From: Lepidodermella squamata
Taxonomy: Eukaryota > Animalia > Gastrotricha
Assembly (NCBI GenBank): GCA_047495785.1
Contig: JBLDXI010000056.1
Location: 186,001-250,000 of the forward strand
Reading direction: 5' to 3'
Length of the DNA: 64,000 nucleotides
The notes beneath the pieces are model-generated. The model was given only the letters and a program-made list of their open reading frames with translations, did not search any database and was not told the origin of the DNA. The number at the start of each line of letters is the position of its first letter. The stretch's first letter is position 1. Shown one piece after another: positions 56,484 to 64,000 of the stretch. A program made the position numbers and the translations under genes.

Positions 56484-56758
56484 GGAATGGTTAACGATTT
56501 TTCTTCGCGGCTTACGTTTTCTTTGTGTGCCTGAACTCGTCCGTTTACAGCTTTTCCAAGGAAATTATCTATTCACCATTAGGGTATATTCTACCGATTC
56601 ACCACGAAATACGCATGTTGCAGGAATCGATCCAGGCAGACGAAGTAAATAAGCCAAGACATAATTTATTCTCTATTAATTATGTAACATTTCTGCCGCG
56701 AGGTGAAAAGCTTCGTCCTTAAGTCTTTCCTATATGCTAAGATCTTGAAGCCGGAATG
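56484..56758 (+). repeat. Duplicated non-coding block upstream of cassette A (diverged copy at ~59787-60131 upstream of cassette B)
   Basis: Collinear shared words: ggaatggttaa, tcgtccgtt, aaattatc(t/c)attcacca(t/g)tagggta, acgcatg(t/g)tgcaggaa, ctattaattatgta, ttctgccgcgagg, ctaag(a/t)tcttga. Confidence 0.8.
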
Positions 56759-57667
56759 AGCGCACAAGTGTGAGGACATTGAGACCGGCACCGGGAGAAG
56801 AAATGCCTGGCGAGATTTGTGAACAATTCTCATCTCGAAAATGCTATTTTCTCATCTTCATGGATCTAAGACTCTTGATTCCTGAAAAAGCATTGTACGG
56901 TTATCAGAAATTTTTTGCTTCGCCTAATTAGCAAAGATCACTCAACAAATTCAAAAAGCTATTTCACATCGCGGTTGGTGGATGTCAAGATGTATTTTAG
57001 GAGAAATTGCAGAGTTGAATCGGAGGTTAATTACGAACGCTGGCTGTATCATCAAATATCGATTAGCACGTCCACTCGACCTATATTTTTGGTGCAATGT
57101 TATTTCCGCTCACAACAGGTGTAAAGTCGAATGCTAGACGCTTTACAAAGTCTGACTCAGAGCTTGGCAAAAACAAAAGCTGTCATAGAGCTTGCAATTT
57201 TATTTTAAGGTAATATTTACTGGAGGCGCAACAATGCATTGTTTCAAACAAAGGGAACAAAATTTTCCTCATGAAGTAACGATATGCCGCGTCGCAGGTG
57301 ACTTGTGAGCTGAATTATTCATGCATTAACAGCAACTTTGCCCTACATTTCTTTTTGGCAATCTGATGTAAGTTTTCAGCGGTTGATAATATCTATAACA
57401 CAATATTCACGATGCGTGATTCAAAACTGGCGGGAGATTGGGGATATATATTCGCAGAAATAGGGTCAGGTTTTGGCGATATGTCAGTTCAATTTCTAAG
57501 ACTACAAGCTTGTAAACCCTGGATTGCGCTGAAGAAAGGTTAGACAATTGACGCATTATCAAAGGGATTACTTATATAGTCAATCGATACCCCCTAACCA
57601 CTCGGTCCGTTGTTAGGCGTTATAGTATCTGCCCCTCTTTTTGAGAAAGTGTGCGTGTTTTACCATC

Positions 57668-57707
57668 GCTATGGACGGGTATAAATATGACTTTCTGAAG
57701 AATTGAC
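57668..57707 (+). promoter_or_regulatory. Putative TATA core promoter of cassette A
   Basis: gggTATAAATAtgactttctgaagaattgac, ~125 nt upstream of ATG 57804; conserved with 60782-60822. Confidence 0.6.
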
Positions 57708-57803
57708 ACGATGAATAATGTATGTTGACAGGAACAGGAGTATAAATGAAAAAATAAGTGCTCCCTGCCAAGTTTTCGTCGCGTGAAGTTTAATAGTTAA
57801 ACA

Positions 57804-58051
57804 ATGCAGCTGCTGGGGCTTTTCCTAAATGTAGGGATCCTGAGTGGCCTTTTCCTTGGCGGTGAGATTATTTGCAAATTTTTCCCTGCGTGATTTACAC
57901 TCTGCATCAATAGCTGTGGCTCCGGTGCCTCCTACACCACCTAACTGTGGCGGTGAAGGCCAACGCGCTGGCTGCTCAGACCACGGTACTTGCAGTCTTC
58001 CGAATACGTGCAATTGTGACAATGGATGGGGTGGAAAAAATTGTGAAAATC
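57804..58051 (+). CDS. Cassette A: 58-nt leader exon (57804-57861) plus variable first-EGF exon (57914-58051)
   Basis: MQLLGLFLNVGILSGLFLG|AVAPVPPTPPNCGGEGQRAGCSDHGTCSLPNTCNCDNGWGGKNCEN; 52-nt GT-AG intron; ends in a phase-1 gtgagt donor. Confidence 0.8.
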
Positions 58052-60822: not shown

Positions 60823-60934
60823 GTAGACGCGATTAATTATGCATTTCGCCGAAAATAGCTTCATGTACGAACCGAACGGAAGTTAGGTGCTCCTAGAAAA
60901 GTTTTCTTTCAATAAAAAATAGCACTATCGAAAG

Positions 60935-61164
60935 ATGCACCGGACGGTGCTTATCCTACTGATATGTTGCTTGAGCGAGTTTTTCTCGATGGGTGAGATT
61001 ATCTTTGATTTACGCATGTTTGGAACATTGAAGGTCTTCTGTCATAACAGCTCTAGCTGGCTGTGGAGGCCCAGGCACTCGCGATGGCTGCTCGTACCAC
61101 GGAAGTTGCAATCCTCCATCTTGTAGTTGTGATAATGGATGGGGTGGGCCAACTTGCGCAACTC
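60935..61164 (+). CDS. Cassette B: 58-nt leader exon (60935-60992) plus variable first-EGF exon (61051-61164)
   Basis: MHRTVLILLICCLSEFFSM|ALAGCGGPGTRDGCSYHGSCNPPSCSCDNGWGGPTCAT; 58-nt GT-AG intron; ends in a phase-1 gtaagt donor. Confidence 0.82.
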
Positions 61165-63070
61165 GTAAGTAATGACAAGTCGCTCCAAGTTGACCCGTGG
61201 TTCTATCCAATTGGTGATTGATCGTTTCATCCATCGCCGAATACATAGGCTTCCTCATCAACATTTTATTTGTGATTTAGGGCAGGCCACTTACACTAAC
61301 CCGATCAGTTGTCATATTGCGTACTCTTTTTGTTATTTATGAAGTATTAAGGTTTCTTTGCAGGACTTGCAGGAGGCAGGCGTCTGGTACGATCATATCT
61401 TGGGGTTTAGCTGCTCCGAAGGGTCCCCCAAAAACCAGAAGGCTTCAAAGCAGGGTAAGCGCACTACGCACTAAACAGTCCTCCCAGTGTGCGCTCAGGT
61501 TTAGCCTCTGATTTTCAATCAATGGACTAACATGATGGTCAGCTATTCTAGCTTTTCACACCAAAAATTGAGGAACGTAAGTCATGTAGCTCAGACCTCA
61601 ATTTGGTCAAAGAAGTTGTATTTCGAAAATTTTCCAAAATTCATAAGCCTGGCTCTTAAAGGTTTGATGAGGCTATATTCAGAAAATTACGCGGATTTAT
61701 ATCGTAATTAATTCGATTTATTGTTGCGTGGCGTTTGCACCGCTTTTTTGGGTTTATCCTGATTTGAAGCCTTCTGCTTTGTGGAGGACCCGGTCGAAAA
61801 ATCGTAAAACTTGTCAGGTCCTCCTGCGTGAGTTGGAGTTGAGACTAATCCTCGTTTCACGAATAAAACCGTGAAACCTGCTGCTACTAGAGTTTCTAAG
61901 CGGATAGTTCCCGAGGAAATGATCAGACGTAGGCATGCTCCCTCACAGTTATCCCGCGGTGAATATGAGAAAATCCGAAATTCAGAATGGTTCGCGATGT
62001 AAGAGGCAGGATATGATTTTTGAAAGTTGTTATCATTCGCCATCTTGAAAATTAGTTTGTGACCTGGTACTTAGCGCCCGCTCATAGCACAATGATCAGC
62101 TATGGCTCATAATATTTAGTCGAGAGTCCCAGCAAATTCCAAAGAATGTCGGCTCGAGGGAAAATTCCGCGAACTGACGAAATGGCAAGCAAAAAATTGC
62201 AAGCAGCCAAAATGTATGGGGCAGAATGTTACTAGCGATATCACTGGGTGATCAACTGATTTTACTCCGAGAGCAAAAATTCATTGAATTCACTAAAATG
62301 GAGGGCGCTATTCTGGAAGCTGGTAAAAGTTACCAGTCACAAATTTAACAGTTACCATTTTCAGGGACAAGCCTGGGCTAATTTGGAAAGGGGTTTCATT
62401 GTCTTAAAAATGGTATTTTATAGCTCTAAATAAATACAGCGCCTCCCTGCAACTATACACCATTTTACTGCAAGGAAAGAAAAATGTTCTTAAGCATAGT
62501 GCATTGAAAGAACCAGAGAACAAGTAAGAGTAACTTGAAATATCACCCCCGATCACTTAGATTTGCCACTTGTATCGCAACTACTAGCACAGCAATACCT
62601 TTTTCTATTAGGCGTGCCAGAGTTACGCACGCGGCCGGTCCTGCGCGCGCAAAAAATATTCTTTCTAGCTAGCGAATAATAAAAAATTACGTATAAAGCA
62701 CTTATTTCGAGAGTTTTTTCGAGGAATTTTGATTTTCTGCGAAGTTCGAGTTAGAACTTGGTCAACATAGGTATGTCGTTTCATAACAAAACTCGTTCTA
62801 TAACGTCTTGAAATGAATTTTTTGCGCGTCAGGGATTAGTCGGCTAAAACATTCATAAAACTGCGAGGTTATGCCAATGATGTAAAAATGTAGCGACTTA
62901 GAGATCAAAATTTTAGTTATTTGCACTGTAAATATCGCCGAAAGTAGCCTGAAAATTATAGAAAACCAGATTTACCTTGCTATATGAAAAGCCTATCGAA
63001 GTGATGAAATGGCTAGTCAGATGTAGCTAGCTTGAGGATTTAGAAATTTTAATAAGGATTCTTGTTGTAG

Positions 63071-63964
63071 CCACATGCGGTCCACTTGGTTCACGCACTG
63101 GCTGTTCCAACCACGGTGCTTGTTCTGTTACTGGCTGTACTTGCGATGCTGGATGGACTGGTTTCGACTGCTCTACAAGTGGGAACAGCACCCGTAGCTT
63201 CAAAATTTTTAAAAATTCGTAAAATTCCTGTTTCAGGTCAGTGCCCAAGTAACTTTTGCCAAAACGGCGGCACGTGTAATGGCGTTAACACTTGCCAATG
63301 CCCCTGGGGCTGGCTAGGTGCTGACTGCTCAACAGGTAAGAACCTGTCTCATCTCAGCATATACCGCAGTTGACTTGTTATTTTAATAGCATTCTGCAGC
63401 AATGATTGCTCTTTTCGTGGTACCTGTACGGCTCCTAACACTTGCACGTGCTACCCTGGATGGTCGGGCGCTGGCTATGGCTGCACATCACGTAATATAT
63501 CTTAGTATTTTCTCTGAATCCAATTTGGAAAACTTCAATTTCAAAATGCTAAAAGCAACCTGTACGGGCAATTGCAACGGACACGGTAACTGTGTATCGG
63601 CAGAGACATGCAGTTGCTGGAGTGGTTGGACTGGGCCGTTCTGTGAATACCGTAAGCTATCGCAAATCCCCACTATCATGACGCTGATATTGAGCTTTAA
63701 AAACAGCTATTTGCCAGTATGGCTGCTTAAATGGCGGTACGTGCTCGTCGCCTAACACGTGCTCATGCCCGAGTGGATATGTGCCAACTTATTCGGGAGC
63801 GAGTCCTGGATGCGAATTCGGTACCTAAATCCATCCATACTAAGAACCCAACTATAAATTCGATTTGGTAGGTTCATGCTGGTGTGCGAACGGCGGGACT
63901 TGCACAGCTCCGAACAATTGCACGTGTGCGCCTGGTTATGATGCTGGCGACAACTGCAACACAC
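63071..63964 (+). CDS. EGF-array exons of a tandem paralogue of the mosaic gene (continues past the window end)
   Basis: Phase 1-1 exons 63071-63178, 63237-63335, 63390-63491, 63556-63651, 63707-63820, 63872-63964. The last five match EGF exons 2-6 of the upstream gene in order ([20 protein letters not shown]; [18 protein letters not shown]; [20 protein letters not shown]; [20 protein letters not shown]). Confidence 0.9.
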
Positions 63965-64000
63965 GTAAGACGAAGGCAAAATGAAATTATGACATTGATA

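Follow-up and report, generated by a model that had tools for sequence, protein, structure and literature searches.

The window analyzed here is the whole 64,000-nucleotide stretch of Lepidodermella squamata contig JBLDXI010000056.1 given above (G000:C56:186001-250000), and our subject is the 5' end of one giant gene that begins within it. Three tandem paralogous giant genes lie on the plus strand, and the window contains gene 1 and the start of gene 2; the reading was extended 60 kb past the window end, with extended coordinates continuing the window numbering. Gene 2 carries two paralogous 5' units, both made up of a promoter, a leader exon, and one EGF exon; unit A has its ATG at 57804 and unit B at 60935. 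Judged from their sequences, both units are kept by selection as working coding and promoter sequence. Because these are old duplicate starts and selection has kept both, gene 2 probably has two alternative starts feeding one body, a reading that we hold at about even confidence.

The two-unit layout proposed in the preliminary description of this DNA was borne out by the sequence and by exon-level checks, as was its observation that the gene starting at 39236 (gene 1) has a leader of the same 58-nt length. The intron between leader and EGF exon measures 52 nt in unit A and 58 nt in unit B. The EGF exons of A and B, together with a third EGF exon farther downstream (exon C, from 63071), all fit the cysteine pattern by which they had been grouped, and they match Pfam EGF_DL_JAG, JAG1-like_EGF2, EGF_Teneurin, or EGF_2, several above the curated cut-off. 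EGF exon A, which encodes a Pro-rich linker followed by a six-cysteine EGF, matches EGF_DL_JAG and JAG1-like EGF. The EGF exons of A, B, and the corresponding unit of gene 3 all begin with an Ala-x-Ala signal-peptidase-type motif. In an independent DNA run, A and B are both covered at normal single-copy depth; the duplication is therefore not an assembly artefact.

Paralogy extends upstream of the coding exons, where the predicted similarity resolves into three pairs of blocks. The distal blocks share 67% identity over 219 nt (blastn), with no third copy genome-wide; the middle blocks share 68% over 81 nt; and the proximal pair spans 57576–57869 and 60705–61000. All three pairs are confined to A and B genome-wide. 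Within the proximal pair, the TATA element GGGTATAAA and a 16-mer, TTTCTGAAGAATTGAC, are identical between the units, whereas their surroundings are ~60% identical and the spacer beyond is unalignable. The conserved TATA element described earlier is thus present at both starts, but the two elements, compared as there described, differ by a 1-nt insertion or deletion. Exact copies of the 16-mer occur in the 121-Mb assembly at A and B only; one-mismatch matches number 8 genome-wide, vs. 3 for a reversed-pattern control. The 16-mer, which follows the TATA element and precedes the expected transcription start, contains TTC-N4-GAA, which we take to resemble a STAT/GAS-type half-palindrome; a site of this type so near a TATA element is an unusual placement.

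The DNA run also revealed variation in this region. A second haplotype carries two deletions upstream of promoter B, one of 69 bp (60194–60262) and one of 117 bp (60534–60650), and the smaller takes out the sole block common to the upstream regions of B and gene 3. Heterozygous single-nucleotide polymorphisms are numerous at 58806–59187. Polymorphism was rejected as a test of constraint, since the 1.9-kb intron between B and C is likewise without variants in the DNA run.

Divergence among the units supplies the evidence for constraint. Unit A, unit B, and the unit of gene 3 lie at about the same distance from one another, with synonymous divergence (dS) of 0.74–0.87 in the EGF core and flanks that are unalignable outside the short blocks. 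The ratio of nonsynonymous to synonymous divergence (dN/dS) between EGF exons is 0.33 for A–B, 0.34 for A–gene 3, and 0.20 for B–gene 3 (Fisher p = 0.026, 0.025, and 0.0006, respectively). These values, a comparison of the kind that the preliminary description had called for, indicate purifying selection on the EGF exons. All six cysteines are kept, and the EGF exons of A, B, and gene 3 (138, 114, and 159 nt) differ in length by 24, 21, and 45 nt, all multiples of three. EGF exon B retains 71% amino-acid identity with the first EGF exon of gene 3, and leader A retains 63% with the gene 3 leader. For ~27 sites in unit A that must stay unchanged—the Cys codons, the ATG, three splice dinucleotides, and the TATA element—the probability that all would survive neutral drift is ~0.0003–0.02, computed at an A-branch divergence of 0.15–0.3 per site.

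Constraint is distributed unevenly between the two copies. Unit A has the better-kept promoter and leader and the faster EGF exon (branch dN/dS ~0.5), whereas unit B has the faster leader and promoter and the better-kept EGF exon (~0.2); these branch values are an arithmetic split of pairwise distances over 34 codons. Over 60 nt, the leaders differ at 25 positions between A and B, 26 between B and gene 3, and 18 between A and gene 3. Leader B has thus changed about twice as fast as leader A or that of gene 3, with ~16 lineage-specific changes. It is still open and keeps its ATG, the most hydrophobic core, and an identical donor, a combination retained in 4–6% of runs of a neutral simulation. 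Searches by tblastn and tblastx for relic body exons between A and B, between B and C, and upstream of A gave noise only.

Exon C had been described as a third member of the set, and it is here that the cassette description holds for A and B, at the sequence level, and fails for C. A scan for leader exons upstream of the body recovered A and B ahead of gene 2 and one such exon ahead of gene 3, and no ATG-bearing leader or promoter belonging to C. Exon C is thus unable to start a message, and mRNAs in which it occurs have to be initiated at A or B. Gene 3, 21 kb downstream, has a single 5' unit: its promoter region is homologous to that of A, its leader measures 58 nt and the intron after it 54 nt, and its EGF exon is of the first type; a C-like EGF exon follows in series 0.8 kb past this unit and leads into the same array and body. 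Homology between genes 2 and 3 starts 9 nt upstream of exon C. From the lack of a leader and promoter at C and the unit-then-C order in gene 3, we favor reading exon C as the first of the shared exons rather than as another cassette. Gene 1 has its 58-nt leader and one first-type EGF exon immediately ahead of the array. The claim that all three EGF exons end in phase-1 donors stands as far as phase goes, all being compatible with the acceptor at 63237, but the GTGGGA donor of C is weak; the donors of A and B are phase-compatible with the downstream exons.

The intron between B and C contains a repeat resembling a miniature inverted-repeat transposable element (MITE), present in at least 40 copies at 82–86% identity on many contigs. 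Its word depth in the DNA run is 2600–3700, or 30–40× the single-copy level. The repeat is not part of the mechanism and accounts for some of the length of this intron.

A segment of ~3.1 kb—control blocks, TATA promoter, 58-nt leader, and first EGF exon—underwent an ancient tandem duplication in gene 2. Under the two-start reading, transcription would start at A or at B, as in an ordinary two-promoter gene, with the signal peptide and the outermost EGF module both specific to the start used. Splicing would then join the message to the shared body from exon C at 63071, the EGF donor of A being joined to gene 2 in the same way, and the products would be two proteins that differ in their outermost EGF. 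A message started at A must skip leader B, given a stop five codons upstream of B's ATG and the lack of a suitable acceptor. Were A's EGF donor joined to B's EGF acceptor, three first-type EGFs would stand in series (one extra EGF); were it joined to C, the cassettes would be exclusive. Speculatively, because introns here are mostly ~50–60 nt, A transcripts might have B's own 58-nt intron excised in one piece, which would leave C as the next free acceptor.

Several observations weigh against two starts feeding one body. At unit B, the leader has dN/dS of at least 1 and the promoter gives no alignment to that of gene 3, both of which would also suit a decaying start. At unit A, the EGF branch value of ~0.5, obtained by branch decomposition over 34 codons, is not significantly below 1 on its own, and the open reading frame ends three codons into the intron if unspliced, which makes a stand-alone small product possible. 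Introns of 3–5 kb would be unusual beside the usual ~50–60 nt. A run search with 57600–63500 listed one DNA run only and no RNA runs, although the long query may have hidden small RNAs, and searches of protein collections found no transcript-derived protein, although records of this genome may be absent there. Polyadenylation signals after A and after B are uninformative.

Part of this evidence would also suit a unit A that lies outside gene 2, either as a mini-gene for a secreted single-EGF peptide of ~68 residues or as a transcribed stub that is never joined, with gene 2 starting only at B. Unspliced read-through of A gives REF and then two stop codons, three codons past the donor; the next usable acceptor is 3.0 kb away in a genome whose introns are ~55 nt; and the EGF exon of A has the highest dN/dS of the three. 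The stops weigh little, however, since B likewise stops early past its donor yet must splice onward. Unit A also keeps a consensus GTGAGT phase-1 donor, as B and gene 3 keep theirs. A protein-collection search with the EGF A frame gave no match, and no similar protein of 40–126 residues was found; these collections may omit this genome, so the blank says little. We regard a separate unit A as unlikely, though it deserves serious consideration.

It is also conceivable that A is the sole promoter and that leader A, EGF A, EGF B, EGF C, and the body are joined serially, the promoter and leader of B being decaying relics of the duplication. The rapid change of leader B (about twice that of A's or gene 3's, with dN/dS of at least 1), the loss of alignment between the proximal promoters of B and gene 3, and the superior conservation of EGF exon B are what such a history would leave. 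Yet the 58-nt frame of leader B still opens with its ATG and encodes a strongly hydrophobic core, and its donor is identical (neutral P for the combination ~0.04–0.06); its TATA element and 16-mer are identical to those of A; and EGF exon B still starts with the Ala-x-Ala motif. A sole start at A is accordingly a poor candidate in our estimation, and two working starts remain our preferred reading.

The preliminary description had gone further and proposed a protocadherin- or sDscam-like system, in which the EGF exons of A, B, and C are alternative tips, one per transcript, spliced to the constant array at 63237. The two-exon layout of A and B with their own conserved promoters, the compatible phase-1 donors of all three exons, and the resemblance to sDscam-alpha cassettes all speak for it. 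Against it, C has no leader, ATG, or promoter, and gene 3 holds a single unit with a C-like exon in series. The array expected of a protocadherin-like locus was likewise not recovered: there are two promoter-bearing units only, the spacers hold no relic units, and neither the promoter word nor the EGF subtype recurs outside the cluster. The proposed genome-wide search for the promoter word and for further cassettes, carried out as pattern and protein searches of 121 Mb, found none more. Nor was an inverted-repeat selector architecture found: a search for selector/docking RNA pairing between the cassette introns and the intron before C returned nothing beyond the MITE's own terminal repeats. 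Three exclusive tips are, on this evidence, very improbable.

Comparison with known systems helps to place the two units. At the clustered protocadherin loci of vertebrates and at UGT1A, each alternative promoter drives its own variable 5' unit, which is spliced to shared exons downstream, and the variable unit is a single large first exon without an acceptor, so that internal inclusion is impossible. Here, by contrast, there are two units only, and the acceptor on each EGF exon makes serial inclusion possible in structural terms. By homology the locus does not belong to the protocadherin or Dscam families: rather than cadherin or Ig/FNIII domains, Pfam identifies EGF, Fibrinogen_C, F5_F8_type_C, and Sushi domains and a weak Lectin_C match. 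In ordinary two-promoter genes, two starts that bring separate ATGs and signal peptides feed one body, as they probably do in gene 2; such genes differ in that the starts here are old tandem paralogues, each with a whole extracellular module, so that the mature proteins, not only their regulation, would differ. Duplicate 5' stubs left by unequal crossing-over resemble the present case in that the unit lies within a trio of recombining paralogues with mosaic similarity, and are unlike it in that both copies here show lasting constraint on their coding sequence, splice sites, and core promoter, which a dead stub would not be expected to show.

In mechanism, the known system that comes closest is the chelicerate sDscam-alpha cassette. 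Such a cassette pairs a short leader exon with a single domain exon behind a promoter of its own, and arose by tandem 5' segmental duplication (PMC4835542). Cassette-to-constant splicing is canonical in sDscam, and isoforms joining exons of tandem cassettes are non-canonical (PMC4835542). The likeness lies in two-exon cassettes upstream of shared exons and in family members clustered in tandem (PMC4835542). The differences are that there are two cassettes here rather than tens, that the domain is EGF rather than Ig, that the gene is a secreted-type lectin mosaic and not a Dscam, and that the arrangement is known here from sequence alone. As we read it, the locus adds a modest case to a type of arrangement already known: a two-copy duplication, giving a gene with two candidate promoters.

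The origin of the duplication fits the behavior of the surrounding cluster. The 5' third of gene 2 is nearest gene 3 (79–83% identity, introns included, vs. 65–72% for gene 1), whereas its 3' half is nearest gene 1 (82–87%, vs. 72–73% for gene 3). The gene 3-like span runs from 63062 to 67544 and the gene 1-like span from 73326 to 81936, with ~5.8 kb between them (67544–73326) that align to neither gene at the thresholds used. This mosaic similarity implies that the cluster recombines or converts gene bodies, the 5' units staying individual. Tandem duplication of a 5' unit is the sort of product that such a cluster makes, and only the retention of both copies stands out. The same recombinant history could in principle have left unit A as a non-functional remnant of unequal crossing-over, but the frame, six cysteines, three splice sites, ATG, and TATA element are intact where the flanks are unalignable, the indels preserve the reading frame, and dN/dS falls below 1, which makes a dead unit A the least credible of the alternatives.

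Beyond these three genes, ~40 further relatives of the fibrinogen-related/sushi terminal exon were found, mostly in tandem clusters on contig C24 (~2.5–4.6 Mb), with others at C21:1006192, at C56:151061 (minus strand), and on C9 and C46. We read the terminal-exon family as a large lineage-specific expansion. A scan for leaders at other family loci yielded spurious leaders inside EGF arrays only. Searched against 1.8 billion representative proteins, the first lectin exon matched five short fragments only, at 42–48% identity, two of which (P0001 and P0002) were traced to environmental metagenome contigs ERZ23486764 and ERZ23486787. A survey of rotifer lectins describes nothing resembling this EGF/lectin/fibrinogen family (PMC8878817).

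Each of the three genes encodes a signal peptide, ~14 EGF modules, and C-type-lectin-like, discoidin, fibrinogen-related, and sushi modules, and the introns that can be defined in them are mostly ~50–60 nt. At the 3' end of all three, a long fibrinogen-related/sushi exon is followed by another sushi exon and then by a terminal exon that is short, conserved, and closed by a stop; the possession of its own terminal exon by each marks genes 1, 2, and 3 as separate. The ~60 nt that follow the last sushi exon are conserved at the nucleotide level in all three genes, with the frame HGELSDRPPRGVPWS and then a stop, and represent either a terminal exon with coding function or a conserved element of the 3' UTR. 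Gene 3 holds ~4.5 kb between two fibrinogen-related exons (L007–L008, extended 95453–99999), vs. ~0.4 kb in genes 1 and 2. The extra sequence is probably an insertion; within it lie a (TGY)n-type repeat, near 96325, and an unrelated open frame of 217 codons (96937–97587). Coordinates of all features are collected in the table below.

Table. Features of the three-gene cluster and of the two 5' units of gene 2 (window numbering, continued past position 64,000 for extended coordinates).
Feature	Coordinates	Strand	Details
Gene 1	39236 to ~54750	+	
Gene 2 (units A and B)	57804–82105 approx., extended coordinates	+	
Gene 3	ATG 83384, end ~103500, extended coordinates	+	
Distal conserved non-coding block, unit A	56562–56759	+	~1.1–1.2 kb upstream of ATG; paralogous to 59928–60133
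Middle conserved block, unit A	57308–57388	+	Paralogous to 60363–60441
Proximal promoter and 5' UTR, unit A	57576–57803	+	Aligns to unit B and gene 3 promoters
TATA element, unit A	57677–57685		GGGTATAAA; transcription start expected near 57710
16-mer, unit A	57692–57707		TTTCTGAAGAATTGAC
Leader exon A	57804–57861	+	58 nt (19 codons + 1 nt); hydrophobic signal peptide MQLLGLFLNVGILSGLFLG; donor GTGAGA
EGF exon A	57914–58051	+	138 nt; phase 1 at both ends; donor GTGAGT
Distal conserved non-coding block, unit B	59928–60133	+	blastn; paralogous to 56562–56759
Middle conserved block, unit B	60363–60441	+	Paralogous to 57308–57388
Proximal promoter and 5' UTR, unit B	60705–60934	+	GGGTATAAA at 60791–60799; 16-mer at 60807–60822
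Leader exon B	60935–60992	+	58 nt; signal peptide MHRTVLILLICCLSEFFSM; donor GTGAGA
EGF exon B	61051–61164	+	114 nt; phase 1 at both ends; donor GTAAGT
MITE-like repeat	61421–61792	.	~375 bp; 43-nt terminal inverted repeats; within B-to-C intron
Exon C	63071–63178	+	108 nt; EGF of the A/B subtype; donor GTGGGA, weak
First exon of regular EGF array	63237–63337	+	Array runs on past window end
Conserved ~60-nt stretch after last sushi exon	Window ~54690–54760; L006 ~8040–8105; L008 ~9480–9540		

For annotation, the locus carries a warning: unit A is easily missed or mis-joined. A broader possibility is that gene 2 represents an early, two-cassette form of an sDscam-type strategy within a ~40-member family of giant EGF/lectin/fibrinogen recognition proteins, in which cassettes would be repeatedly duplicated and used exclusively, the outermost module swapped by promoter choice, and the bodies homogenized by gene conversion; we consider this doubtful. 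The cluster presents a contrast between starts that are individual and bodies that are exchanged among neighbors. If both starts are used, one gene would yield a pair of giant secreted lectin-type products, distinguished by their signal peptides and outermost EGF modules. In that case, duplicated promoter-plus-exon cassettes would diversify an N-terminus here, on a small scale, in a gene that belongs to neither the cadherin nor the Ig family.

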